From NCBI RefSeq assembly GCF_032191835.1, contig NC_083232.1:682001-746000 (forward strand): DNA of 64,000 nt, written 5' to 3'. Of the stretch, positions 41,001 to 62,870 are shown piece by piece; the first letter of the stretch is position 1, and every line of letters starts with the position of its first letter. The stretch is from Heteronotia binoei. Lineage: Eukaryota. The translations under genes and the position numbers were made by a program. Below the pieces are notes generated by a model that worked only from the letters and a program-made list of their open reading frames with translations, made no database searches and was not told the origin of the DNA.

Positions 41001-43148
41001 ATCACACCTTTGGAGAAAAGTGGGTGGGAACTGGAGCCCTCCCTCTGGGGGAGCCGGAATGTGCTTACACTGAAGCTCCTGGTCGGGCTGCCGGCAGAAT
41101 CCCACTGGATCCCAGGCTCCTTTCAGCCCGGCCACTCCTCCCTCGGGACCCCCGTGTCAGACTCTTTCTCTGCCGCAGGGAAGTCCACAGTGGCTGCGCT
41201 CCTGGAGCGGTTCTATGAGCCCACAGCGGGCACCATCTCCCTGGACGGGCAGGACATCAGCACTCTGGACCCTTCCTGGCTGCGGGGCGAGGTCATCGGC
41301 TTCATCAACCAGGTGAGGAATCTGGACTCTCCCGGCGGGGAGGGGAGGGGAGGGGGGCGCAGCTGCCAAAGCAGACTGAAGTAAGCAGCTCCTGGGCCCA
41401 CCTGGAGTTAAACGAAGGGACTTTCCACTGGGAAAGGGCATGACGGAGACTGGTCTCGATGGCTTTGAAGGAGCTGGGAATATTCACAACTTGGAGCGCC
41501 TGACAGGAAAGCACTTGGGAAAAGTCTGTGTAGGAGCAGCAGCTTCAGACTCTGGGCCGCCGGAGCTGGCAGGAGGGCAGGACACCTCGGCCTTGAGGTG
41601 CGAGAGGTGACTGCGTCCCTCGTCTCTGTGCTCCTTAGACCTGGCATCGCAGGGCAGCTGTTGCGGGAGGTGATGTGTGGCCCGAGGACTGCCTGTTCTC
41701 CCCGGGAGGAGGTGGGGAAGGTGCAAGTGCCCCCTTGTCCCTGGGACTGGAGCTCCGTCCTGGTTCTGAGGCCTCCCTCCTTCTGCCCCCCCCCCAGGAG
41801 CCAGTGCTCTTCAGCACCTCCATCATGGAGAATATCCGCTTTGGCAAGCCGAGTGCATCGGATGCTGAAGTCTACGCTGCTGCTTGCCTGGCCAATGCTG
41901 ACTGCTTTATCCGCAGCTTTCCTGAGGGGTACAACACCGTGGTGGGTCAGTGAGATGGGCGGGGCTTGTGGGGGAGGAGGTGTCCCAGCACGGGGATTCT
42001 GAGAGCAGGCATTTGGGGAGGAAGGCTTTCTGACCCATGGGAGGCTCTGTAAGCTCCGGCCATATCTCTGCAGGCCGCCTCCCCCCCCCCCCAAAGGCTT
42101 GTCATCTGATAAGGTCACAGTCTCTGCAGAGACAAAAAAGGGGGGGTCGCCACTTGCTGACTTTCTGCTGGGAAAGGGCCATTTTATTTTCTTTTTGGAG
42201 CACTGCCCCAACACCACGTGTGTGACGGAGCAGAGCCCTCCCTGCTGTTACCGGAGCGGTGGGAGGGGAGGGGTCTTCTGGCGAGGGACCCCCGAGCTGG
42301 GGCGGGAGAACCGGAGGGGTGTTCTGAGCTCGGTGCCCGTTGCAGGGGAGCGCGGGGTGACGCTGTCGGGCGGGCAGAAGCAGCGGGTGGCGATTGCTCG
42401 GGCGCTGCTGAAGGAGCCGGCGGTGCTGGTGCTGGACGAGGCGACGAGCGCGCTGGACGCGGAGGCGGAGCGGCTGGTGCAGGAGGCGCTGGAGCGGGCA
42501 GGGGCCGGCCGCACCGTCCTCCTCATCGCCCACCGCCTGAGCACCGTGCAGGGCGCGGACCTCATCGTGGTGCTGGCCCAGGGCCGCGTGGCCGAGGTGA
42601 GCCGGGGACAGGGGGCGGGGGGGGGGAGCTCCAGTCTCGAGGGGGCGGGCCTGGCGGAGGGGGGGTGGACCCAGCCTCGAGGAGGCGGGCCTGGGCGAGG
42701 GGGGGAGCCCCAGCCTCGAGGGGGCGGGCCTGGCGGGGGGGCAGCCCCAGCCTCGAGGGGGCGGCCCTGGCGGAGGGGGGGGAGCCCCAGCCTCGAGGGG
42801 GCGGGCCTGGGCGAGGGGGGGGAGCCCCAGCCTCGAGGGGGCGGGCCTGGCGGGGGGGGCAGCCCCAGCCTCGAGGGGGCGGGCCTGGCGGAGGGGGGCA
42901 GCCCCAGCCTCGAGGGGGCGGGCCTGGGCGGGGGGGGGCAGCCCCAGCCTCGAGGGGGCGGGCCTGGGCGGGGGGGGCAGCCCCAGCCTCGAAGGAGCGG
43001 GCAGCTGACGCCGCCTCTCCTCCTCCCCCCCCCCCCGCAGGCGGGGAGCCACGCGGAGCTGCTGAGCCGGGGCGGCCTCTACGCCGAGCTGATCCGTTGC
43101 CAGACCACGAGGGACGCCGCCGCCCCCAATAAACCACTCCTCCAATAA
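31859..43148 (+). CDS. ABCB8: Mitochondrial ABC half-transporter ABCB8 (mitoSUR), 16 exons, 698 aa
   Basis: Exons 31859-31947, 35169-35466, 35641-35790, 35927-36021, 36259-36364, 36469-36630, 37089-37174, 37698-37795, 38378-38483, 38570-38603, 39528-39664, 40069-40163, 41179-41312, 41798-41945, 42346-42596, 43041-43148 (2097 nt, in frame). Arg/Leu-rich mitochondrial presequence, Walker A GESGGGKST, signature LSGGQKQR, Walker [14 protein letters not shown]-loop IAHRL, and ABCB8-typical [16 protein letters not shown]. Confidence 0.96.
32101..32615. mobile_element. hAT-type MITE (TAGGGTTGCCA end)
   Basis: TAGGGTTGCCAAGTCC at 32101; degenerate right end CTGGGGATTGGGAAGCCTA. Confidence 0.55.
33540..34205 (+). 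mobile_element. L2-clade LINE RT and 3' fragment
   Basis: [35 protein letters not shown]. Confidence 0.72.
38880..39375 (-). mobile_element. tRNA-derived SINE, family B, with triplicated 120-bp head
   Basis: GCCATTCCAG...GGGAGAACTG/ACC...CTACACC unit starts at 39044, 39164, 39284. Confidence 0.82.
40301..40847. mobile_element. hAT-Charlie-type MITE
   Basis: CTCTAGAG|CAGGGGGTCAAAC ... GTTTGTCACTCCTG|CTAGAG; TCTAGA target preference and partial TSD. Confidence 0.65.
42625..42995. repeat. GC-rich minisatellite (10 units of 37-40 bp) in the last ABCB8 intron
   Basis: Unit about CCCCAGCCTCGAGGGGGCGGGCCTGGCGG(G)n; CTCGA cores at 42636, 42676, 42715, 42752, 42792, 42832, 42870, 42909, 42949, 42988. 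Confidence 0.92.
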
Positions 43149-43149: not shown

Positions 43150-43714
43150 CCACGCCTCTCCTCCCCTAAGCCACGCCTCCGCCTCCTTCCTACAACTCCC
43201 GGCCTGCTCCGGCTCTTAAAGGGCCCGCGGAGCGTGACTCCGGCGCCGCCCCCCCCTCGCGCTCCGGGAGGACGAGGAGGCGGCGGCCCAGCCCCGCGGC
43301 AGGAGGGCAGGCAGGGAGGGTGGAGCAGAGGGCGTCGGGGGTGCGGGGCGTCCTCTCTCCCTCGGGGGTGGCGGGGCTGCCCAGCCCGGGAGCGGGCGGA
43401 GAACAAAGGGCGGGCGGGGGGTCACCTCGGGAGGGGGAGGCGGGCCGCACTTGTCCTTCGGCGGGGGGGGGGGGCATCGCGTCCTGCTCGTCCAGCTGCC
43501 AACCTGCCGGGGGGGGGGCGGTCTGTGCCAGTCGGGGCCCTGGCGGGTGAAGCCCGGAGTTGCCGCCGCCGCCCCCCGACGAGGGCTTGACTGCTCGGCC
43601 TGCCTGCCTGCCTGCCACGGGGGCCGCGGATCCTCCATCGCTCCGGCATGGCCGAGGGGCTGCAGCCGCCGGACGACGGGGCCCTGGGGACTTGCGGGCC
43701 TCCAGCCCCCCTGG
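43150..43714 (+). promoter_or_regulatory. CpG-island promoter and candidate first exon of the downstream KRAB-Harbinger gene
   Basis: CpG-rich; CCACGCCT GC-box-like motifs; TTAAA at 43216; ATG in good Kozak context (GGCATGG) at 43648 encoding MAEGLQPPDDGALGTCGPPAPL; strong donor G|GTGAGG after 43714. Confidence 0.55.
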
Positions 43715-48850: not shown

Positions 48851-51040
48851 GGTGTGAGTCCAGGGCATCCGAATGACCCACAAAGTTTAATTCTGGACAC
48901 AAGTTTCTTTGAAGTGTGCACATGCACACCAAAGCTTGTTATACCCAGAATGCAACTTTGTGGGTCTTCAGGATTCCGGGCTGGACTCAGGTTTCATTCT
49001 GACATTATCCTCGGGGAGTTGGTGGCCTACAGACTGGCAACTGGGGGAGATGACGAAGGGGGAGTGGAGACCACAGTCCACCTGCTGCCCGGTCATGCCG
49101 GGACATGGGGGAGGGGCTGCAGTGGTCTTGCTGCACAGAAAAGATGCCCTCTTTGCTGCTGGGGCAGGGGTGGGGAATTCTTGGCCTGGGGGGTGGGGTG
49201 GGGAGAGAAGAGGACAATGTTTTGCGTCTTAGACCTGAGGCCTTGGAAGGGGTCACTTTGAGGGCTGCTAACAAGTGCCCAGGAGGCTCCTGTCTGCCTG
49301 CCTGAAGGTGGGGGGGGGAGGATCCCAGGAGCAAGTTCTCTCCCCACCCTTGCTGCTGCTGCCCCTCCTCCAGCCACCTCCCTCTTGCTTCCAGGGCTCT
49401 CCTTGAGGGAGGGGCCATGCCCATTCTGTAACTGGGAAGACTGGACTGAGGAGGAGAGCATGTTGCATCCCCCCCCCCTTCCAACATCACAGTTTTGAAA
49501 GCAGATTTCTTTCTAGAAATCTGTCCTGGTTTGGGGCGTGGGGTGTCTCTATCTTGTCCTCCTCAGCCCCCAAGCGCCAGCACTTCTGCAGCCCTCCCAT
49601 CCCATGCTGCCCTTTCTGTCCTAGAGGTGAGTCGGTGCTGGAGGCAAAGTAACACCTTCTGGAGCCAAGTGGGAGGGAAGGCATGTCTCTGCAGTGCCCC
49701 AGGCCCTCCGGGCAGGCGGGCGGGTTGGCCTTGTTTGCCAGGAGGAAGGAGCCGCCCGTGCCAGGTGCACAGAAGAGCTTGTAGGGCTGCAACTGACTGA
49801 CGGGGGGAGGCAGAGTGCCGAGAGCAGTCCCTGGGCCTAATGGGGAGGGGCAGGACGGGGCACCTTTCCCAGGTGCTGGAGGTGTTTGGAGCCAGGCCAG
49901 GAGGCGGCTGGGGGCTGAGCAGGCTCCTGGGGCAGTCATGGAAGTTGCTCTCAGAAGGCTAGAGAGACCGGGGCCCAGGAGGACTAGCATCTCCCCTTGG
50001 GCCTGGAGGTCCGGGCCTTCCCCCACGGCTGCCCCCTGGCCCTGGGCTTCAGAGAGTGGCGGCTTCCCTTTCGCCAGCAGCCTTTGAGAGACCTCTGCTC
50101 CATGCCTCTCGTTTGTTAACTGTCTGGTGTACAAAACATCCATTCCCCCCATCTTCTTTAAAGCCTTCCAGAAAGCTGGTTCTGTGTGAGGCTGCCCTGA
50201 AAGCCCCCAGCAGTGCCTGGGCCTCTTGCCTCCTCCAAGGCATAGCTGGGGACCCTGCAGAAGCCCTCCAAGGCAGGCTGGGAGGCTGATGGCGGCCTGC
50301 CTGCCTGCTTTCTGGACCCTACAGGGCTTGGGCACCTTTGGGCAAGCCCCACCTGGCCAGGGGAAGAGGCAGCTTGTGCAGAACACATGGCAGCAGTTGA
50401 GGCTGCTCAGAATGGGCCAGGCCTTGCTTTGCATTTCTGTGCCTTCTCTGAGTCTGCTGGGGCCTCCGTGCCTTGCTGAGTGGCTGCAGCCCCAGCGCTG
50501 GAGCAGGGCAGAGGAGGACTCTTACAGGGAAGCACTTGAGGGGGGAAGGAGCACCTCTGAGCCGCCACAGCACCCCTCGAGGCTCCTGCATGCAGGGGGA
50601 AGGTGTAGCGGGGCTCAGGGGGCCACGTGTGCTGGAGGAGGGAAGCTGGCGGGTGTCTTCCAAAGAAGAAAACCTGGCCCAGGCGGCGAGCGTCAAGGTG
50701 TCCTGGGTTCTTTCTTCCAGCCTGGGTGTCCCCCACAACTGCTCAGGAGCCGGACTGCAGAATGGAGGCCGGCGTGGGCATCTGGGAAGCGGCAGGTGAG
50801 CGTTGCCAGTGGCCTAGGTCTAGAGAGATGCGGGCCAAGGACTTTGGAATCTGACCAGAGGCCTGGGGTTGGGCGGGGGAGGTCAAGAATCTGGTTAGAG
50901 GTCAACCCTCTGTGGGACCCTTCTGGAATGAGTGGCAGCCGGCAGCCATAGAGGAGGTCGGAGGGTGCTGGGCTGGTGGGGAGGAAGTGTGTGTTCCTCG
51001 CTGGAGGCGGGGGGGGGCGCTGTTCAAGTTCACTGTTGGC

Positions 51041-51079: not shown

Positions 51080-52934
51080 CTCTTGCCGCTTCTCTTCCTG
51101 GATTGCGCTTTCTCTTGATGCCTGGAGCCCGGAGAAGGGCCTGCATTCCAGGAGCTCCCTCCAGAGCTCGTGAGAACGCCGTGGGCCATGATACTGGGCT
51201 GGCTCACAGGGCTGCTGGCAGGATCTCAACCGGGTCACACGTGGGAAACCCTGTGATCCCAGAATGGACCGCTCCCACGTGGTGGGAACTCCCTCCCGCT
51301 TCCTGATCATCCTGCGATCTCCTTGACGTGCAGCCCAGCTCTGCTGTCTGCCCTCCTGCTTTCTGCTGGGCCTCTATCCAGCGAGGAGGCTCTGCTGCCA
51401 GTCCTGGTCTGCATGTCCTCCGTGGGGCGCTCTTCTGCGTGGCCCCTCAGCCCCACTCCATCCTGCTTTTGGGCTTGCTTTGCAGCCCACTTTTTGCTCT
51501 CTCTGGCTTCTTTCTGCCCTGAAGGCAGGGACCAGGCCTCTTCCCTTGTGTCTTGTGTGTGTGTGAGAGAGAGAGAGCACAGACTGTGGGTTTTCACCCA
51601 GGCCACTGAGCTTAGCAGGTAAGAAGACCTGCCTTTGTCTGGCTGCCTGTCTGGAGCAGAGAGCCCGAAGAAGCAACAGCGAGGGGGTGGGGAGCTCTGC
51701 CAGGTCTTCTGCTGCATTGCACCCGGGCAGGTTGGGGGACCTGCTCTTCCTGGGGTGGGCTGGAGGTTCCTGGGGGCATCTCTGCAGTGCCAAAGCCTCC
51801 TCCCCCCAGTGCAAAATCTCTGCTCCTCATCCCCAGGCTGTGAAGGCACCAGCTTGCCAGCTGTTCCCCTGCAGGACTCTTTGGTGCCCCCCGGAGCCTG
51901 GCACGGCCTGTGCACCTGGCAGTGTTGGCACCAGAGGGTCTTGGAGCACCTGGAGCAGGAGAGGGCCCCCGGCAGCCCCTCGCGGATCGCTCAGGTGAGC
52001 AGATGGAACTGGAGGTGGGGGGGAGGCGGGATGCTGAAGCAAGCTTTGGAGAAGGGGAGGGCATAAGCAGGAAAGAAGCTGCTGCGGCTGGCTGTGCTCC
52101 TGTGTGCCACTGCAAGTGCCGCTTCACAGGACCCCTCCTGGCTCTGACTGGCTGCACAAACAGAGGCACAAGTCAGCTCAGGGGCGTGGCCAGGAAAGCC
52201 CTTCCAGGTGTCTTCGCTTTCTGTTTCCTGGAGTGATGGAGCCCCTCTTCTCTGCAGGTCTGCCCCCTTCACTGGCTCAGCTCAAAGGGCTGCGAAATCC
52301 CCTTTCTGGGAGGGGGAGCCTCTGCAGGCCTTGCCGGGACCAGAGCTCCTGCCCTCACTGGGGGGGCTGCCTGGCGATGCTGCCAGCTCGGCAGGGGTTC
52401 TGTCTTCAGCTGGTGCCCTCGCCTGGCACAGGGACGTTACAGAGTGCACCTCTTCCCTTTTGCCAGCCGCTGGCCTCTTTGCTGGTTGGGCACTGGCAGG
52501 TGGACGTAGCCCCCTCCCCAAGCTTCTGCTGCTGCAAATCTCTGCATTGGAGAAGCCCCCCAGTGCTGATGGGTGTGCTGGCTGTTTCTGGGCCTGGCCT
52601 CCCCTCCCCAAAACACACACGAACCCCAAGGGCAGTTTACGGCAGCCAGAAGGAAGCCTGAGAGCCGATCAGAGCAACTTGGTGTGCTCCGAAATGTCTC
52701 TGAAGGCTGCCTGCCTGGCTTCCAAGGGGGGCAGTAAAACTTCCCATGGTAAGCTGAGCGGGTGGGCTGCTGCCATCAGTGGGTGGGGAGGAAGCACAGC
52801 AGTTCCCCTCCCCTTTCTTCCCTGCCGGGGTTATATAGTCTCTCTCTCAGTCTGCCCACATCTCACCCCTCTGGAGGCCAATGAGGACTCTTGCAGGGAC
52901 TTCTGCTGCTGTTAGAGATGCCTGCAGAAGCAGA

Positions 52935-53664: not shown

Positions 53665-53785
53665 GTGACCTTTGAGGACGTGGCAGTCTATTTCTCCCCA
53701 GAGGAGTGGGCAGAGCTGACGGCATGGCAGAAGGCCCTGTACTGGGAGGTGATGAAGGAGAACCACACCCTGGTGGCCTCTCTCG
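53665..53785 (+). CDS. KRAB-A box exon
   Basis: ttttcag|[41 protein letters not shown]|gtaagg; typical phase 0-1 KRAB-A exon. Confidence 0.92.
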
Positions 53786-56700
53786 GTAAGGGGCCGAGGG
53801 CTGCATCGTCCAGGGCAGGGGGGCTCTCCGAGAGGGCGGGGCGGAACTGCAGAGGCGCTGTGGCCCGTGGTGCTGGGGGAGCACCTGGCTTGGGCACCCG
53901 CAGGGCCACTAAGGGAGGTGTTTGGGCCAGGGCAGAGTGGTTCCTGGCTGAGCAGGAGGGCCGAGGCTTGAGTTCTCCTCCTGCTCTTCCCTTGGGTGGA
54001 CACCCCCCCGCCCCCTCGCAGGGCCTTGCCTTCTCTCCCACCCTCAGGTCAGTCTTCTGTGTTCTTTCCTCTGACCAGTGTCTGCACCTGACAGCCAGCC
54101 CGAGGCCCTGTGCCGGATCGCATGTGGGGAGGCCCCCCCCTCTGAGAACCCGCTCGGGGGGGAGAGGGAAGCCGCTCCCCGGGACCCCAACCCGGGTGAG
54201 TGATGCTGGGTGGTCCCTCATTGCGTTGAGAGGCATGGGGTGGGTGCTCTGTCTGCTGGAATGCGGCCCCCAAGGCTTCCCCTCTGTGCCGGAGGAGGGG
54301 GGGGTGCAGGGAACCCCTGCCTCTGGGCTAGCTGCTCTGCAGAGCCAGGAACACCCCCCCCTTTTTCACTCCCATCCTGCCTTCCTTGATGTGATGAATG
54401 CAACGTATGAGTAAGCAAATCACAGCGACTGGGGGATGGCAGGACAGAGGAGCCTATCAGAAAGTCCGGCAAAGCAAAAGGCTCGTCTGTGGCCACCCCC
54501 TCCCCTCCCCAGGTGGCAACGCAGAACGCCCGGCCTGGAGAAAGAGCAGAGATGCTCTTGCACAAAATTATGATGTTGAGAAATACGATCTTCCCAGAGC
54601 TCTTGCAAAGAGAGAGTGGGTGAAAGAGAGCTGATTGTACCAGTTTCTTGTGCCTCGTCTGGTCCAGCTTTGCCTGTCCTGGGGGTGGGGGCAGCATTTG
54701 CACACACGCATGCAGCCCACCCACCCCCACCCCAGACCTCCCTGCCAGAACACAGAAGCTGATGGGGCCTCCAAAGAGAGAGGCAGACAGGGGAGGCAGT
54801 GGCCAGAGGGCAGTGAGGTGTGGAAAGTGGACACACACGGTTGAGAAATCCCCCTGGGCGGGGAAATCAGCTGCCTCATCTGGTTGGAAGAGGCCCTCTC
54901 AGTTCTCTCCCCTGCTTCGTCTCTTGCTGCCCCTCCAGCTGTGGAAAGCTGGCAACAGAGTGCTGGAGGACCAAAGGGCTGGTGGACCAGAGCGGTTGCG
55001 CTTTTAGGGTTTAGCTCAGTTGTAGCATCCATATCAAACAATGGCGTGTATTTGCTTCAGACAAGCGCACATCTGTTTGACTTAACTGGTTGTCTGGCAT
55101 GGGGGCGCTGGTGCTTGTAAGCAGTTCCGCGTGTCTAGCAAAGGGTGCTCAGGCCTGGCTCTGAACTGCAGCTTTCCAGGGTGGGGGAGTGCTTAAGCCA
55201 TTACAGTCAGAACAACTTGAAAGTGTCTTAGGCATCATAAAGATCTCTCTCAGGATGGAGGCTGGTAGGCATTGAGTTGGTGGCAGGGAGGGCGGCTTTC
55301 AGCTCAACCCAGGGAGCCCCTCTGGGCTGAGCAGGGTCAACCCTGAACTGTCTGGCCCCCTTCTGGCGCACCCCCCCCCCACGGATAACATCACCGAGTC
55401 ACATGGAGGGTGCCCAGTTTGGCGCCCCCAGAAGGCCAGCACCCAAGAACACTCCCCTCCCCCCCCCGGCCATCCTTCCCCCTTCGCCAGGGCTCGCTTC
55501 TCCCCCAGCCTGGAGCACAAGGGCTGGTGCTGAGTGGGGCTTCCCTCCCTCCTGCAGGAGCTGGGACAGACGGCCCCTCTTCTTGGGTCAGACCAGCTGC
55601 CAGGGACGCCTCCCAGCCGGAAGGAGAGCAAGCGGGCAGGAAGAGTGACTCAGAAGAAGCGGGGCTGGAAACCCCCACTGCCCCCAGCCCCGGTGAGTGA
55701 CCCTTGGGGTTTGTGGCGAGGCGGGCCCCAGAGTCCCCAGGCTCCTCTTCTGGGGGGGGCAGAGCTGCCACTCAGGCATGCAGAGTAGGGAAGGCAGCCC
55801 CCTCCCTGCTAGCTGCCCCCCCCCCCAATTCCAGTGTGGCTGCGGCTCTGGATCACCAGGCTGAAGCCCACATGGGGGGGGTGCTAGGAAGGGGGGACAC
55901 CAGAACTCTTTGGGAAGAAGAGCTCAGCAGAGACAGCTGGGGGGGGGGGCTGCTGCTGACACATGAAGGGAGTCTTCCAACTGGGGCAGAGAGGACAGTG
56001 GGAGGGGGTCAGATCCTGGAGCCTGTGGGGCCCAGAGGGCTTGAGGTGGGGCAGGGGCCAGCAGGTCATCTCTGGGGTTCAGCTGAGGCTTCCTCTGGAG
56101 CGCCTGGAAGTGGAGAGGGAGGAGGCTCTTTCTGGCTGCAGGCTCCCCCGGGGCCTCCTGATTTGCCTCTTCTCTGGCTCCTCCCCCCGCAGGCCCCAAT
56201 CTCTGCATTAAGGTGGAAGAGGAGCCCCCCCACGACTGCCGGGAGTGTGGCCGGAGCTTCCCCGAGAGGGACGTGCTCATCTCCCACTTTGGCGAGCGAG
56301 CCCTGCCCTGCCCCGAGGGCGGGAAGTCGCTGGGCAGTCCCGGGAGCCTGGCCGCCCACCGGAAGGCTCCCCGCCAGGAGCAGTGCCTCTTCACCTGCGT
56401 CGCCTGCAAGGGCAGCTTCGTCTACGAGGAGCAGGAGGCCGGGCGGATCCGTGCGCAGCTGGCCCTGGGGGAGCTCTTCAAGTGCTTCAGCTGCAGCTGC
56501 CACATCCCCCTCGCCCTGGACCAGAAGGGGGACGTGCTCCACGGCTCCCTGCCCTTTGGGCAGCCAGACAGCATGTACTACAGGTGCGGAGGGGACTGCA
56601 CGGGAGTGGAGTCGGGCTGGGCTGCAGGAGTCCACAGGGAATCGTGCAGGTGTAGAGTTGGAAGGGACCTCCAGGGTCATCTAGTCCAACCCCCTGCACG

Positions 56701-59700
56701 ATGCAAGAAACTCACAAACACCTCCCCTCCCCTCCCCTCCACACCCGCCCAACGAGCCCTGCTCCACGGAGTCTTTAAGGAGGTTCTGAATATGGAGGGG
56801 AGCGAGTTTGGGGGAGGGTTCGTTTCCCCCCCCTTTAGTGAAGCCATGGGCTTCCATGGTTGTGAAGCTTGCACACCCAGGGTAGGCAACCGGGAGGAGG
56901 GGTGGTAGGCCTGTGACAGTCAAGGTGCTGAGACAGAACCTCCATTTGCCTCTGAATAGGAGCGCTTTGAGAGAAGTGACTGGGGAGAGCCTGTGTCCTG
57001 CTTGCCAGCTCCTGAGACTGGCTGTGCTTGGGACTTCTTTTTCAGGGCTGCCATTACGTTCTGGGAAAGGAGTCTGGCTATTTCCTGGCTCCCAGAGGAG
57101 GGGCCTGCCCTTTTGGGTCATTCCAGCTGATCCAAAGACAGCAACACTGGTTTGGGCAGCACATGAAAAAGCCGTTCAACCCTAGAGCCCATGGCCAGGG
57201 AGGCTGCCCAGGGCTCTTGGAAGCAAGGGAGGGGCCGTGGCTGCTGGAGCGGAAGGGTCTGAGGCTGAAGGGGAAAGGCCTTTCCCTGCTGCCGCCCTCC
57301 AGAGGTGAGACCAGTGTCCTGCCTGACCCTTCGTTCTGGCTCTCAGGCACACCTCCCAAGCAGTTGACCCCCGGCCCAATGACCACAGGTGTCTCTCAGA
57401 CCAGTCCTTTGGGAACATTCCTATAAGGACAAAAGAGAAGCCATGTTGGATCAGGCCAGTGGCCCATCCAGTCCAACATTCTGGGCCAAAACCCAGGGGC
57501 CATCAAGAGGTTCACTAGCAGGGCCAGAATGACTGAAGCCCCCCCTCCCCAGCACCAAGAAGACAGAGCATCATTACCCCAGACATAAGAGAAGCCCTTT
57601 TGGATCAGGCCAGCACTCTGCATCACACAGTAGCCGAAGCCCAGAGGCCGCCCAGAGGTCCCCCAGCGGGGCCTTGAGGCCAGAGCAGAGCCCAGAGGCT
57701 CAGGTGCCTGAAGAAAGGCAATTGGTCTAATCCTCACTGTGTTCCCATCTGCAGAAATTTAAATCCACAGACGGGGGCCGTGGAAAGAGGAGTGGGGCTT
57801 TGTTTCCTTTTTACCAACTGGGGGGGTCTTCAGAAAAATCGGGGGTGTTTCCCCTTCCCAGATGGGCCTCTATCAGCCACCTTCCTTCATCCCTCCCTCC
57901 TTCCCTTCCTGCAGCCACCAGCAAGCACTGGATCAGGTCCGCCAGCGGGCAGCTCACTGGACCATCTCAGAGACCAAAGCCTTCGTGGAGCTCTGGGGGG
58001 ACAACTGCGTCCAGACAGCGCTCTTTGACAACTACCGCAACGAGGTGCAGTACAAGCGGCTGTCGGAGAGGATGGGGAAGCTGGGCTTCCACCGCAACCT
58101 GGAGCAGTGCCGGCAGCGGGCCAAAGACTTGCGGAGGGGCTTCAAGGAGCTCAAGGACGGCCACCTGCACTCCAACCGGGCGCGCCAGACCATGCCTTTC
58201 TTCCCCCTCCTCGACCGCTTCCTGATGATCAGCCGGGGGCTGGTGATCCCCAAGGTGTGTGCCAACCGCGCCAGGCAGAAGGGCCGGAGGGGCCGGAGCC
58301 GGAGGGAGGAGCTGCCCAGAGAGCAGCCCCTCGTGCTCCTGCTGTCCCCCGGCGGCTCAGACTTGCACCGCCTCCCTCTCTCGGACCGGGACCGCTATGT
58401 CCACGCACTGGGGCTCCCCGGCTACCAGCTCCCGATGCCCGACCAGGTGGCAAGCCTTCCTGACTACAAGGTGCGGCTGCCCAAAGAAGATGCCAGGGGC
58501 CACGTGAGGGGGGTGCCCAGCTACCAGCTGCTGAGGCACGGTGACGCCTCGCTTCCCTGTGCCGCGGGACTCTCTGACTTCCCCCTACGGCTGCAAGACC
58601 AAGATGCCTCCTGCGTGCCCAGCCGCCTGCAGCAGCAAGAGGTGGCACTGGCTCCCCCCATCAACGGGCTCTCTGCCGCCAGCAGCCTCTGGCAGGAGAT
58701 GACTTCTGGCGCTCCCGAGCGCCCGGCCAGCACCGCAGCCCAGGGGAGCGTGCAGGGTAAGTGGGCCACCTCCTCTTGCCCCTGCCAGGGCCGGGGGGGA
58801 GCTGCGCTCAGGGCCTGGGCCAAAGAGGCCTCAGCAGTGCTCAAGCTGCGGGGGGGAGGGGGGGGAAGAGCAGGTTCTTCCTGTGCTCCTGCACGTTGGC
58901 CTCACCTTCTCACAGTCTCTAATGCACACCTCTACCCGCTGCCCCAAAAGACCTGCACTGGCTTCTTTTCCTAGCGCATCACAGGGCTGCTTGCCATTTT
59001 TTGCTGTGTTCGGGGGAAAGGTTTGTTTAAGGGCCCTTCAGAGGTTCTGGCTCTGCTGATGTATCCCTCTGCCACCCACCCCTCCTTTTGCAAAAACAGA
59101 CCCAGATAGGAAAAGGCAGGAGGCAGGAATACGTGGGAATTCCTGCTGGAACAGGGAGAGAGGCGCTAGCAGACAGGGTCTCTTCTGCTGGGGTCCCTCT
59201 GAAAAAGCACCACTCGGGAATCTCCAAAGAACATCTAGACTGACCCGTTAAGAAGGCAGCACAGCATGAAGAGCAAGAGCAGCTGGCAGGTGGAAGCAGC
59301 GGAGTCAGCTGGGGGGGGAGGCCCTCGGGCTTTGCTGGGGGGTCTGAGTCTCCCCCGGGCAACCAGTGCCATAAACTCCTTTGAGCTTAGGAAAATGTTT
59401 TCCAATCCATTTTATATTTTCAAGAACGAGAGAGAATGATCTTTGGAGACATGAATGAGGTAATGGTTCCTATGAAGAAATGCATTATTCTCCTGAGATG
59501 TTGGCATGCAGGAAAACTCCCCCCGCCCATCCCCGCCATGTGCATTCCCCCCCCCCCCCCACCTCTGGGCTGGAAAGATGGAAGTCAGCATGTCGTGAGC
59601 TTCCAGGCTCACCTTCTTACAAATGCCAGTTGAGCTAGCAGGACAGACAGTGGGATGGTTAAACGCCCCCCTTCTCCAAGCAGGGAGGCCAGCGTGTGGT

Positions 59701-62441
59701 GCTGTCAAATGCCAGAGAGCCTTTAGGGAGACAGGAAAAGGTGCCTTGGCGGACCTGGGTCAAGGGGCAGGGAAAGAGACTGGATAACATTCCTTGCAAC
59801 AGGAAGAGAAGGGCTCTTGCCGCTGGTCCATCAGGGGAGACTGACCTCTGACCTGAGGTCTAGGGAAGGTGGCCAGCCTAGAGGGCTCATGGACTCTTGA
59901 CATTGCAAAAGGTAATTGTGATCTGCAAAGCTTTTGGTTGTGTCTTTGCACTCTCTAGGATTAATAGCTAAGGTTTTTATATCAGTCCTTGAATATGTTT
60001 GGTGTCTGTTGGAAAAGAAAGTATAGTCCTTACACCTGGCTGGCTCCACCTCCTTTCAGTGTAGCAGCAGTCAGACTGTGAGGCCTCCATTGGGTCCAAC
60101 GTACTTGCTTGAGTCCAATTTATATTTTTTTTGGGGGGGGGAGTGAGATTTAGGGGGAGGGCTTGAAGATCAGAGGCCTTTTAAAATCTCCTTTTGCCCT
60201 GGATGCAGGAATGTGCACTCTGTACATGTTCATGCTCTTTTTGCTGTCACCTAAGATGGTATGGGGCAGTTTCAAACAGGCAACCAGCTAGGTAATGTGA
60301 GGCAGAATTTGCCATTTTAGTACCTATTGTTACTCTGTAATTTTAGATTTTATATATTTTAAATTGGGTTTTCCCTGCTGATTGTTTTAATGATGTAACG
60401 CACCCTGAGTCTGCTCTGCAGGAAGAGTGGGCTGAAAGCTGAATAAAATAAATAAAAATAATGCTGAGAGAAGAATTTGGGAGGGGAAACCCCAGTTGAG
60501 TAGCCCTTTCAAAATGACAGCAAATGTATTGCTATAGGATTCGGGGGTTCTTTGGGGGGTGTACTAAAAGGAATGACTGGATTACCCATTGGAAACAGCG
60601 GGAGAGGTTTGAAGGCCCATTAGAGATAATGGGAACCAGGAATGCCAATCGACTTGCATGCGCTCCATTGGAAAACACTGAGCTCAAGAAAAGTTGCAAA
60701 GAAAATGTGGAATGGATTTTCTGCTAAGGTCTCTTGAGTCCAGATAGGCTACTCTGGAACTGGAATGACAGACCCCCAGAATGGAATAACAGCCCCTGGG
60801 AGCAAAGTTAAGAAAGTTCAAAGTAGCTTAGTGTTTATTTCAGTTCCTCTGTATGTCTTATGCCAGTACTCCAGTTGATTCATTGTTGTACCTTCATGTG
60901 CTGCTCAAAACCATAATTTCCCACTGTCCAAAATCCCAGGAAATGATCTCTCTTCTTGTTCAGTCTTAAATCCTGGGAATCATGAACTTTGCTGCAGATA
61001 TTCAAAGAGTATTTTTACTGAAGCAAATTGTACTAACTAAGCGAAGCCAAAACAATGTATTTGTAATGGGTAGTGAGAGGGAAAAAATGAAAAAGGTGGT
61101 TGGATTCAAAAGGGGATTGAAAAAGGGCAAAACGAAATCCAGGTACGAGGCCCAGAGCCGCGCAGCAAAGTGGTGCTGAAATCCAAAGCAGTGGCAGCAA
61201 CTAACCCTTGGATTGTTTTCTGCCTCGCAGGGTGGCATCCAGGGAAAGCCCCGAGCTCCTCTGCCAAGCGCATGCGTGACCTCCGCTTGCGCCGCAGAAG
61301 GCAGCGGGCAGCGATGGCGCGGGTCTTGCTGGGGGCCAGTTATCGTCCAAATGACCGGACAGTGTGGAGCAAGACCCAGAAAACAGACTGGTGGGACAAC
61401 CTGCTCGCCGGCCAGTTTGACAACCATGAGTGGGTCCGTTACTTCCGCATGTCCCGGGACGCGGTGCTGGAGCTGGTCGAGAAGCTGCGGCCTGTGCTGC
61501 AGCGGGAGGACACCAACATGCGCGCAGCCATCCCCGTGGACAAGCGTGTGGCCCTCACGCTCTGGAAGCTCGCCACCTCAGACAGCTACAGATCTGTGGC
61601 CAACCAGTTTGGCGTCGGGGTGTCCACTGCATCTGTCATTGTGATGGAGGTGTGTGAGGCAATCCACGACGTGCTGCTGAAGCACGTTGTGCGGCTGGGA
61701 GACACGCAGGCTGTCATGGAAGGCTTTGACAGGGTCGGCTTCCCCAACTGCCTGGGGGTGGTGGATGAGACCCACATTCCCATCCTGTGTTCCCCCCACG
61801 GAGCCTCTGCCTACATCAATGGGAAGGGGCTGGTCTCCATGGTTCTGCAGGCCCTGGTGGACAGCGCTGGCCGGTTCATGGACGTGTACGCAGGCTGGTC
61901 TGGCGGGATGCAGGACTCCGGGCTGCCCTGGGGCTCCCCCCTCTTTGAGCGGATGGAGAAAGGCACTTTCGGTCCCCAGAGCACCACAGAGATTGAAGGC
62001 GTGGTCATGAGCCCAGTCCTGCTGGGAGGGCCCGCGTGTCCCCTGCGACCGTGGCTCATGACACCCTACCCCGAGGCCAGCAGCGAGCCCCGAGAGCGCT
62101 TCAACGCCATCTTGCACAAGTGCCGCATGGCCGTGACCTACGCCTTTGAACGGCTGAAAGGGCGCTGGCGGTGCCTCCTCAAGCGCCTGGATGTGGCAGA
62201 GAAGAACGTCCCGCTGGTGATTGTGGCCTGCTGCATCCTGCACAACATCTGCGAGACCCGGAACGAGGCCATGCAGGAGGGCTGGGAGGAGGGAATGGAC
62301 TATGCCGATCTGCCCTCAGCCACCTCGGAGAGCCCTGTGGACAGCAGCTGGGAGGCGGAAGAGGCAGGGGAGGCCCACTGCATCCGCGAGGCCTATTGCG
62401 CTCTCTTTGAAAAGAGGCGGCAGCAGGAGGAAGGGCTGTGA
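53665..62441 (+). CDS. Predicted KRAB / degenerate zinc-finger / Myb-SANT / Harbinger DDE-nuclease fusion gene (6 exons, 938 aa from KRAB-A; N-terminal exons unresolved)
   Basis: Exons 53665-53785 (phase 0-1), 54079-54195 (1-1), 55558-55692 (1-1), 56193-56583 (1-2), 57915-58756 (2-1), 61231-62441 (1-stop). All have pyrimidine-tract AG acceptors and GT donors; total 2817 nt with no internal stop. Confidence 0.75.
54079..54195 (+). CDS. KRAB-B-like exon
   Basis: ctgaccag|(V)[39 protein letters not shown]|gtgagt; [13 protein letters not shown] resembles KRAB-B PDLISRLERGEEP; phase 1-1. Confidence 0.65.
55558..55692 (+). CDS. Low-complexity linker exon
   Basis: ccctcctgcag|(G)AGTDGPSSW...[10 protein letters not shown]|gtgagt; phase 1-1, open frame. 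Confidence 0.6.
56193..56583 (+). CDS. Exon with degenerate C2H2 zinc fingers and CxxC pairs
   Basis: cccgcag|(G)[46 protein letters not shown]...LAAHRK...[10 protein letters not shown]...FKCFSCSCH...MYY AG|gtgcgg; phase 1-2. Confidence 0.75.
56652..56720 (-). repeat. CR1 3' end
   Basis: TAGAGTTGGAAGGGACCTCCAGGGTCATCTAGTCCAACCCCCTGCAC. Confidence 0.75.
57424..57700 (-). repeat. LINE 3' end of the same family as the 44.5-45.2 kb array
   Basis: AGAGAAGCCATGTTGGATCAGGCCAGTGGCCCATCCAGTCCAACA... Confidence 0.7.
57915..58756 (+). CDS. Myb/SANT-like (Myb_DNA-bind_4/trihelix type) DNA-binding domain exon
   Basis: [14 protein letters not shown]...[42 protein letters not shown]...[13 protein letters not shown] fits the Harbinger/MSANTD/ZSCAN29-type Myb pattern. 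Acceptor ttcctgcag at 57914; donor G|gtaagt after 58756. Confidence 0.88.
61231..62441 (+). CDS. PIF/Harbinger (HARBI1/ALP1-like, DDE_Tnp_4) nuclease exon, intact frame, catalytic site degenerate
   Basis: [95 protein letters not shown]. Acceptor ttttctgcctcgcag at 61230 gives phase 1 in this frame; TGA at 62439-62441. Confidence 0.93.
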
Positions 62442-62693
62442 CAGTGGGGGGAGAGGGAGGAGTGGGGGTTTGTGTGTGTGTGCTGTCCCTTCCCAGCTCT
62501 GGTTTCACTCAAAAGGACGGGGTGGGCTTACTCAGGTGACATGCCCCTCTGGTGTCCCTACTTCTTGGGGAAAAGGGACAGTCCACAGGGCGGCAAAGTC
62601 CGCCTTTTACCGGTTGCACTGTTTGACCTTTTATAAGCCTTTTATAAAAATCTTCTTCGCTTGAGGTAGTCAACTTTCATCCAGAGTCTCTCC

Positions 62694-62699
62694 AATAAA
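62694..62699 (+). terminator. Polyadenylation signal of the fusion gene
   Basis: AATAAA about 250 nt after the stop codon. Confidence 0.6.
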
Positions 62700-62870
62700 T
62701 GGTTTTCTTCTTCTTCTTCTTCTTCCACTGAGTCACCTTTAAAACCTGCTGGGTCCTGAACTAGCTCAGCTTCCTCCCCAAGAACAGAAGAAGACAAAGG
62801 AGTTTGTCAGCTGCTCTGAGTCTCTGATTCAGAGAGACGGGCGGGGTATAAACCTGCAATTCTTCTTCTT

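Follow-up and report, generated by a model that had tools for sequence, protein, structure and literature searches.

Cosby et al. catalogued 94 host–transposase fusions, among them four KRAB–Harbinger genes, KHARBID1-4 (bioRxiv 10.1101/2020.05.07.082677): KHARBID1 in Toxicofera, KHARBID2 and KHARBID3 in python, and KHARBID4 in Archosauria, with a SCAN–Harbinger gene in Squamata besides. KRAB–transposase fusions act as repressors, according to the same study. Further relatives are the domesticated pairs ALP1–ALP2 and HDP1–HDP2 of plants and HARBI1–NAIF1 of vertebrates, in which Harbinger nuclease-type and Myb-type modules have both been kept by selection. Here, we analyse a gene within a 64,000-nucleotide stretch of the Heteronotia binoei genome (assembly GCF_032191835.1, contig NC_083232.1, positions 682,001 to 746,000 of the forward strand), which we call the window and in which all unprefixed positions are counted. 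The gene is probably a domesticated KRAB–Myb–Harbinger host–transposase fusion, predicted to be dead as a nuclease, and is present in squamates from geckos to agamids. An earlier note on this DNA had proposed that both proteins of a PIF/Harbinger element, the Myb/SANT DNA-binder and the nuclease, were captured there in one host gene of undescribed architecture.

Like KHARBID1-4, the gene is found in reptiles, is old, and stands in a single copy, and its KRAB box is very probably spliced to a DDE_Tnp_4 body, as theirs is. Its ratio of nonsynonymous to synonymous substitution rates (dN/dS) is 0.13, against 0.04-0.08 in the KHARBID entries of the Cosby table, none of which has a listed Myb domain, and it is 40-44% identical to KHARBID1 (Pogona LOC110070590), KHARBID3 (Python LOC103055168), and KHARBID4 (Alligator LOC102577222). 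In the transposase tree, it forms with a DDE-only model of Anolis a clade of its own (support 100/99) that is sister to a stand-alone paralog; KHARBID1, KHARBID3, KHARBID4, and the SCAN–KRAB forms are placed elsewhere in the tree, in different clades. The gene IDs of the Pogona (110082590), Gekko (107118608), and Podarcis muralis (114607153) orthologs are all absent from Table S3 of the Cosby preprint. The squamate gene is a separate locus that arose by a capture independent of the KHARBID genes. The claim of an undescribed architecture holds insofar as the locus is not a KHARBID gene, but KHARBID1-4 are published and the gene itself stands in RefSeq and GenBank as predictions named 'uncharacterized protein LOC...'. 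It is very probably a further case of the KRAB–transposase fusion class, predicted but uncharacterised in public annotations.

Other systems resemble it in part. The ALP, HDP, and HARBI1–NAIF1 systems consist of two separate interacting proteins, whereas the squamate gene has one chain and a KRAB box. In Anopheles, a PIF transposase (APLG1) and a Myb/MADF protein (APM1) were co-domesticated and are given in the annotation as one transcript with introns supported by RNA-seq (PMC9710019); that system is from an insect, has a domain of the MADF type, lacks KRAB, and is not treated as a fusion protein in the paper. ZSCAN20 and ZSCAN29 (SCAN, Myb_DNA-bind_4, and C2H2 fingers) likewise hold a Myb_DNA-bind_4 exon inside a gene of the SCAN/KRAB zinc-finger family, and the TIGD-G4-Zscan29 fusion of the Cosby table likewise has a transposase domain added to Zscan29. 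In this type, however, the Myb domain stands ahead of the fingers, and the captured transposase is Tigger rather than Harbinger.

Gene structure and domain content

We rebuilt to the base the six-exon frame at 53665-62441 and reproduced exactly the 938 amino acids and the phases that had been described for it. The exons amount to 2817 nucleotides with a single terminal TGA, and AG acceptors preceded by pyrimidine tracts and GT donors are found throughout. An acceptor stands at the start of the KRAB exon, which therefore is not the first coding exon; the gene begins further upstream. Searches with ortholog proteins (tblastn) placed a probable ATG exon and a conserved exon ahead of KRAB (Table 1). 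The former matches amino acids 1-28 of the Gekko japonicus ortholog (68% identity, E 1.6e-4), and its MAEG start agrees with the N-termini of Gekko, Eublepharis, and Zootoca. The latter (match to 52000) is found with 13 of the 14 ortholog proteins at 43-81% identity, the remaining one being a Pogona isoform that lacks this part, and is in frame with both the ATG exon and the KRAB exon. With these upstream exons, the product has 1013-1022 amino acids. At the other end, the poly(A) signal reported at the gene end lies within a block (62524-62710) that is conserved with the sequence immediately 3' of the Sphaerodactylus stop codon. The region 53665-62441 is likely to be the 3' two-thirds of one protein-coding host gene spanning ~43.65-62.7 kb.

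The Pfam search matched KRAB, Myb_DNA-bind_4, and DDE_Tnp_4, the three families for which the earlier note had proposed a profile search, and also HTH_Tnp_4, the last with a score under the Pfam cut-off (Table 1). A full-text literature search with the three Pfam names together gave no papers. The transposase exon comprises a basic N-terminal helix, HTH_Tnp_4, and DDE_Tnp_4. The Myb exon holds, in this order, the domain, an extension that is conserved to ~58290, a linker that varies, and, close to its 3' end, a short motif that is again conserved. The Myb domain is 83-92% identical among the ortholog proteins and leads to generic Myb/SANT clusters in the ESM Atlas, and the exon weakly matches the plant GT-1 trihelix domain (2ebi, E 0.014). 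A predicted complex of the DDE and Myb exons scored 0.00, with the partner's own fold at a predicted local distance difference test (pLDDT) of 42-47, and counts neither way on binding.

The remaining part is a zinc-finger-type exon, as had been proposed, but its fingers are not canonical C2H2 fingers in Heteronotia binoei. No Pfam zinc-finger family matched the exon at 56193-56583 up to E 0.1. An alignment of the orthologs shows two canonical C2H2 fingers kept in Hemicordylus and neither Cys/His set intact in the species of the window: finger 1 has lost its His-bearing segment, and finger 2 has lost one Cys and one His.

Conservation and selection across squamates

The transposase exon occurs in one copy in the 2.63-Gb assembly. 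The next genomic matches to it are 55, 49, and 46% identical, and below them come numerous copies of elements at 35-44%. A search of 1.84 billion representative proteins gave as its top match a protein of 1125 amino acids from Phrynocephalus (85% identity, residues 724-1123), which has KRAB, Myb_DNA-bind_4, HTH_Tnp_4, and DDE_Tnp_4 in the same order and with the same junction context. Predicted proteins of 881-1263 amino acids with Myb/SANT and DDE_Tnp_4 were found in 13 squamate species besides Heteronotia binoei, from geckos to agamids: Phrynocephalus, Pogona, Rhineura, Sceloporus, Hemicordylus, Podarcis (two species), Eublepharis, Zootoca, Tiliqua, Sphaerodactylus, Gekko, and Varanus. KRAB is present in the listed proteins of 12 of them and missing from the listed Pogona isoform; RefSeq models join the Myb and DDE exons in 12 of the 13. 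Nearly all are named 'uncharacterized protein LOC...', and one is named 'ALP1-like'. The transposase exon of the window is 85-90% identical to those of geckos, an amphisbaenian, a skink, a cordylid, lacertids, agamids, and Sceloporus, and ~77% identical to that of Varanus. The KRAB exon is 80-97% identical in five squamates.

We fetched five orthologous loci (Sphaerodactylus, Sceloporus, Hemicordylus, Phrynocephalus, and Varanus). All have the same exon order on one strand, and the order that was to be checked across species is thereby kept. Four of the five share an upstream ABC transporter and/or a downstream gene of the ribosomal S12/S23 family on the opposite strand; the exception is Varanus, in which the flanks differ (an ATG9 gene, plus an ABC transporter downstream). 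The frame did not arise by chance, since the same exons are found in the same order and frame in these five other loci. Squamates diverged roughly 200 million years ago, so that a gene common to geckos and other lizards would be roughly that old.

We computed pairwise Nei-Gojobori dN/dS among six species, with codon bootstraps (Table 1). The values fall well below one for KRAB, the Myb domain, and the transposase exon, as expected under the proposal of a functional gene, and go down to 0.04 over the first 40 residues of the transposase exon, its basic N-terminal part. Purifying selection acts on the KRAB, Myb, and transposase parts.

These data bear on whether a decaying or still mobile Harbinger element might simply lie beside a KRAB gene by chance. 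Such an arrangement would be in line with the many Harbinger copies of the genome, some of which have intact frames. It is nevertheless extremely improbable in view of the single copy, to which the second-best match is 55% identical, of the exon order shared by five other squamate loci, four of them with common flanking genes, of a dN/dS of 0.13 kept over roughly 200 million years, and of a catalytic triad lost in all orthologs (see below).

No snake protein was among the full-length ortholog matches, despite many annotated snake genomes; this absence may reflect gene loss or the limits of the search. Anolis appeared in the ortholog search only as a DDE-only Ensembl model. The annotated isoforms vary: among those of Pogona (isoform X5, P0156), Gekko japonicus (P0167), and Podarcis muralis (isoform X7, P0162), one is without the KRAB box, another leaves out the zinc-finger exon, and for Podarcis there are seven isoforms or more. 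Products with and without KRAB or fingers may arise by alternative splicing.

Table 1. Features of the gene in the window, with the selection estimates for its parts.
Feature	Position	Strand	dN/dS (bootstrap 95%)	Evidence or remark
Probable first coding exon (ATG)	43648-43714	+		Ortholog N-termini by tblastn; GT donor after 43714; homology placement only
Small optional exon, in some orthologs	near 50721-50797
Conserved pre-KRAB exon, without Pfam family	51837-51994 (alternative acceptor 51810)	+		tblastn of orthologs
KRAB-A exon	53665-53785	+	0.13 (0.07-0.26)	Pfam KRAB (PF01352) at 53665-53787, E 2.2e-20, scoring 72 bits with the cut-off at 20.4; splice sites
Short post-KRAB exon, weakly conserved spacer	54079-54195	+		tblastn of P0167 amino acids 120-158, 74% identity; AG/GT, phase
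Spacer exon	55558-55692	+		tblastn of P0167 amino acids 158-211, 50% identity; AG/GT
Zinc-finger-derived exon	56193-56583	+	0.56 (0.43-0.79)	Covered by RNA contigs, spliced to 57915
Myb/SANT exon	57915-58756	+		Pfam Myb_DNA-bind_4 (PF13837) at 57955-58218, E 1.2e-15; RNA junction 56583^57915
Myb domain and short extension (first 125 codons of Myb exon)			0.20 (0.13-0.33)
Myb-exon linker			0.55 (0.45-0.70)
Intron, Myb to transposase exon	58757-61230	+		GTAAGT donor, pyrimidine-rich CAG acceptor
Harbinger transposase exon	61231-62441	+	0.13 (0.10-0.17)	Pfam DDE_Tnp_4 (PF13359) at 61761-62246, E 2.6e-20; stop TGA 62439-62441
HTH_Tnp_4 match	61539-61673			E 1.2e-4, 22.0 bits, under the Pfam cut-off of 27 bits
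Triad position D178	61764-61766	+		First Asp, 'D-x-T-H' strand, kept
Triad position G266	62028-62030	+		Asp of 'L-G-D-x-A-Y' motif in 88/114 transposases
Triad position T302	62136-62138	+		Glu at R-x3-E-x6-K place in 85/114 transposases
3' untranslated region	62442-62720	+		AATAAA 62694-62699; conserved block

The last exons of an ABC transporter lie at 41164-43106 on the plus strand, ~540 nucleotides upstream of the ATG exon (ABC_membrane and ABC_tran in the orthologous loci). The transporter is directly upstream of the gene in Sphaerodactylus, Hemicordylus, and Phrynocephalus. The tblastx comparison of the flanks was noisy, and we relied on it for these transporter exons and the conserved 3' block alone.

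Transcription and splicing

We aligned two sets of RNA contigs (X1 and X2) and two raw RNA runs to positions 56100-62000. Two contigs (X1 record 1, 1162 nucleotides; X2 record 9, 1081 nucleotides) join 56583 to 57915, which demonstrates splicing between the zinc-finger and Myb exons and confirms the first of the two junctions singled out in the earlier note. A further contig (X2 record 8) carries 173 nucleotides of upstream exon sequence joined at 56192/3. The evidence for the second junction, 58756^61231, is indirect. X2 record 9 tracks the genome to 58757 and continues with 12 letters unlike the intron, X1 record 7 has ahead of 61230 seven letters that are unlike the intron, and both contig ends overshoot by one G, which is exactly what the opposite exon would supply. 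The intron between them has zero depth in all four RNA runs apart from short repeats, and the contig depth is equal for the Myb and transposase exons (7.6 and 7.5 in X1). The junction between these exons also kept its features in six species, namely an AG|GTAAGT-type donor, a pyrimidine tract with a CAG acceptor, and phase 1, although the length of the intron ranges from 280 to 2478 nucleotides.

Several observations weigh against a functional protein made from a single transcript. We saw no read or contig spanning 58756^61231 in the aligned RNA, so that this junction is backed by contig ends, empty intron, and conserved splice sites, but not by a spanning read. The RefSeq models that join the exons are predictions, and there are DDE-only Ensembl-type models for Anolis and Varanus. 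In-frame Met codons near the start of the DDE exon (residues 14 and 28) make a separate DDE product possible. In the protein itself, Lys or Arg stands where the Myb domain would have its third Trp, and the 'MLE' motif of the mammalian KRAB-A box reads 'MKE' both here and in the ortholog from Phrynocephalus, so that binding of a co-repressor by this KRAB box is an assumption.

The missing read, the DDE-only models, and the Met codons would all suit a pair of neighbouring genes, a KRAB–zinc finger–Myb gene and a separate domesticated transposase, that predictors have misjoined. A contig of another squamate, 88% identical (Logan contig of SRR31946008, L029, 5465 nucleotides), would suit it too, since it holds the Myb and DDE exons ~1.2 kb apart with the intron unspliced; its source can be either DNA or pre-mRNA, and it carries no evidence on splicing. 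We nonetheless regard two genes as very unlikely. The consensus donor and acceptor and the matching phase persist in six species despite the varying intron, RNA contigs leave the genome at both splice sites with the one-base overshoot, and the intron is empty between exons of equal depth. Predicted proteins in 13 other species, 12 with RefSeq models, join the exons. Moreover, the transposase frame is open from the acceptor onwards, and the residues preceding its first Met are among the most conserved of the exon. The fusion of the Myb and transposase exons in a single transcript is very likely real. These results support the proposal of one host gene with KRAB, a zinc-finger-type exon, Myb/SANT, and Harbinger DDE_Tnp_4 parts on one strand and in one frame.

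Two intronic repeat pieces (56653-56727 and 57423-57600) show huge RNA depth, reaching tens of thousands in contig depth. Most of the reads over them continue into unlike sequence, which indicates repeats resembling short interspersed elements that are transcribed elsewhere, and not expression of the intron.

Loss of the catalytic triad

To the transposase exon and the 14 ortholog proteins we aligned a diverse set of 114 Harbinger transposases. We assigned three columns to the D/D/E triad, using the IS4/IS5-type signature together with the RNase H-like arrangement of an AlphaFold2 model of the exon (pLDDT 81.8, predicted template modelling score 0.79, RNase H-like order of strands and helices). 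In this model, residue 178 lies in the first long strand, residue 266 just after the short strand 4 (262-264), and residue 302 on the long helix 285-311. The first Asp is kept (Table 1). At the second position, the window and each of the 14 ortholog proteins have Gly, and the adjoining Tyr has become Cys. The third is Thr in the window and Thr, Ser, or Ala across the ortholog proteins (D-G-T/S/A). Two stand-alone paralogs of the same genome and a turtle element have an intact D-D-E.

In the part that had been called a nuclease, the window and every one of the 14 ortholog proteins thus lack two catalytic residues out of three. Altering one triad residue of the Ping transposase sharply lowers transposition (PMC4671723). 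Judging from its residues, the squamate transposase is catalytically dead, with the second Asp and the Glu lost. It shares this pattern with plant ALP1, whose triad is DGA in place of DDE, against DGT in the squamate gene: two of three residues are replaced in each (PMC4671723, PMC7282668).

Structure searches added only leads. Foldseek with the DDE model gave no match in the PDB at E ≤ 0.001; the weak top rows (E 0.02-0.5) were mostly DDE transposases and retroviral integrases (ISCth4, TnsB, piggyBac, Metnase). A sequence search of the PDB found no relatives of the DDE exon.

The genome holds other Harbinger-derived frames. The tree sister of the fusion gene's transposase (L003, G000:C15:23380992-23382053; support 95/92) is a frame of 471 amino acids with an intact D-D-E, and it has no Myb, KRAB, or SCAN match within 10 kb. 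Another (L002, G000:C5:40243741-40244691) is a single-exon frame of 557 amino acids with 55% identity to the transposase exon, and its D-D-E is intact. Orthologs of ~485 amino acids, named 'ALP1-like' or 'uncharacterized', occur in many squamates, including snakes, and this frame may be another domesticated Harbinger transposase gene.

Origin of the Myb exon

The claim that both PIF/Harbinger proteins were captured implies that one Harbinger element lay 3' of a KRAB zinc-finger gene and had both of its genes spliced on, which would make the product a single-chain version of a two-protein transposase. The zinc-finger exon is normally the last one in KRAB-ZNF genes, and here the Myb and DDE exons are adjacent, co-linear, and both 3' of it. 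Myb_DNA-bind_4 is the domain type of the Harbinger partner, and the element copies of the genome have it beside their DDE genes. The C-terminal motif of the Myb exon is conserved, as is the basic N-terminal helix of the transposase (dN/dS given above), and these two ends correspond to the regions that mediate Myb–nuclease binding in the Ping, ALP, HDP, and NAIF1 pairs (PMC7282668). The Anopheles transposase and Myb pair, co-domesticated and annotated as one transcript, also speaks for such an event (PMC9710019).

Other evidence points away from a common capture. We paired by eye, from coordinate lists, ~30 genomic DDE and Myb matches at most 15 kb apart, and the two genes are convergent, not tandem, in all of them. 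In addition to these pairs, a Myb match (L027) is found 8 kb downstream of a DDE match on the same strand, with the DDE ahead. The nearest turtle Harbinger family, with a transposase 50% identical to that of the gene, has convergent Myb and DDE genes as well. In the Myb tree, the clade of the gene joins (97/97) three Myb exons around which no transposase is found for 10 kb; of these three, one is 3 kb downstream of a SCAN exon in an arrangement like that of ZSCAN20 and ZSCAN29. All element-linked Mybs of the genome that were taken into the tree form another clade (98/95). The Myb is 33% identical to that of the turtle family and 36-48% identical to the host-type exons. We hold the capture of both genes from one element, with the Myb exon thus coming from the same element as the transposase, to be a real possibility, at somewhat less than even. 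The capture of both proteins is unproven, given the convergent element copies and the grouping of the Myb with host-type exons.

The label 'Harbinger-type' is safe for this Myb domain in any case, because Harbinger partners are regarded as the ancestors of all Myb_DNA-bind_4 genes in vertebrates (PMC9392472). A region-restricted protein search with the Myb domain returned orthologs only and left the outgroup unnamed. In the ESM Atlas, one Myb paralog (L019) fell in an MSANTD2-like cluster at 0.91, which we take as a lead only. By identity (48%), the closest Myb paralog is the one situated 3 kb downstream of a SCAN exon, with both on the same strand (L021, region G000:C5:25636200-25656200). A second match (L020, C106:220065-220439) has the same identity (47.7%) and the same match coordinates in tblastn, and this copy on C106 is probably an unplaced duplicate or haplotig.

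The boldest version of the proposal is that both genes of one ancient Harbinger element now form one dead, KRAB-tethered chain that still reads DNA resembling Harbinger ends through intramolecular contact between its Myb and transposase parts. We consider this version tentative and on balance doubtful.

The Harbinger copies themselves were found in ~30 places (for instance C8:85363285/85370360, C4:74401334/74406071, C2:3763793, C643, and C652), with the two genes mostly 2-8 kb apart. Several Harbinger families of the genome keep open frames of 518-523 amino acids. One of the families has copies on C2 and on small contigs whose scores and match ranges are identical, pointing to either recent activity or duplicates in the assembly.

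Proposed function and significance

The product of the fusion gene, of ~1,015 amino acids, would carry in order a KRAB-A box, the decaying C2H2 exon, a Myb/SANT domain of the trihelix type, the variable linker, and a full-length Harbinger transposase body. With DNA cutting presumably lost, the protein could act as a sequence-specific regulator of chromatin or transcription. The Myb domain would read DNA, probably aided by the helix-turn-helix of the transposase; the dead transposase core may serve as a scaffold for oligomerisation or protein docking, as in plant ALP1 and HDP1; and KRAB would bring a co-repressor, by the precedent of other KRAB–transposase fusions. We infer this regulatory function from the relatives of the gene. 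That the fingers decay steadily while the neighbouring Myb domain is conserved suggests a transfer of DNA recognition from the fingers of the host gene to the captured module.

Among the documented vertebrate routes to new transcription factors are KRAB–transposase fusions, to which the squamate gene very probably adds an old example. Plant ALP1 became a Polycomb accessory, and the loss of the same two catalytic residues in the squamate gene raises the question of what role a nuclease-dead Harbinger core can have. To our knowledge, the Myb and nuclease parts are always separate proteins in the functionally studied Harbinger-derived systems. A Myb domain and a dead transposase in one chain therefore offer a natural test of whether covalent linkage replaces their interaction. 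If single-chain co-capture is true, this would be a first case among vertebrates of a two-protein transposase whose components were both fused and domesticated together. Should the Myb prove to be the cognate partner of the transposase, the gene would depart from the known KRAB–Harbinger fusions as a variant form.

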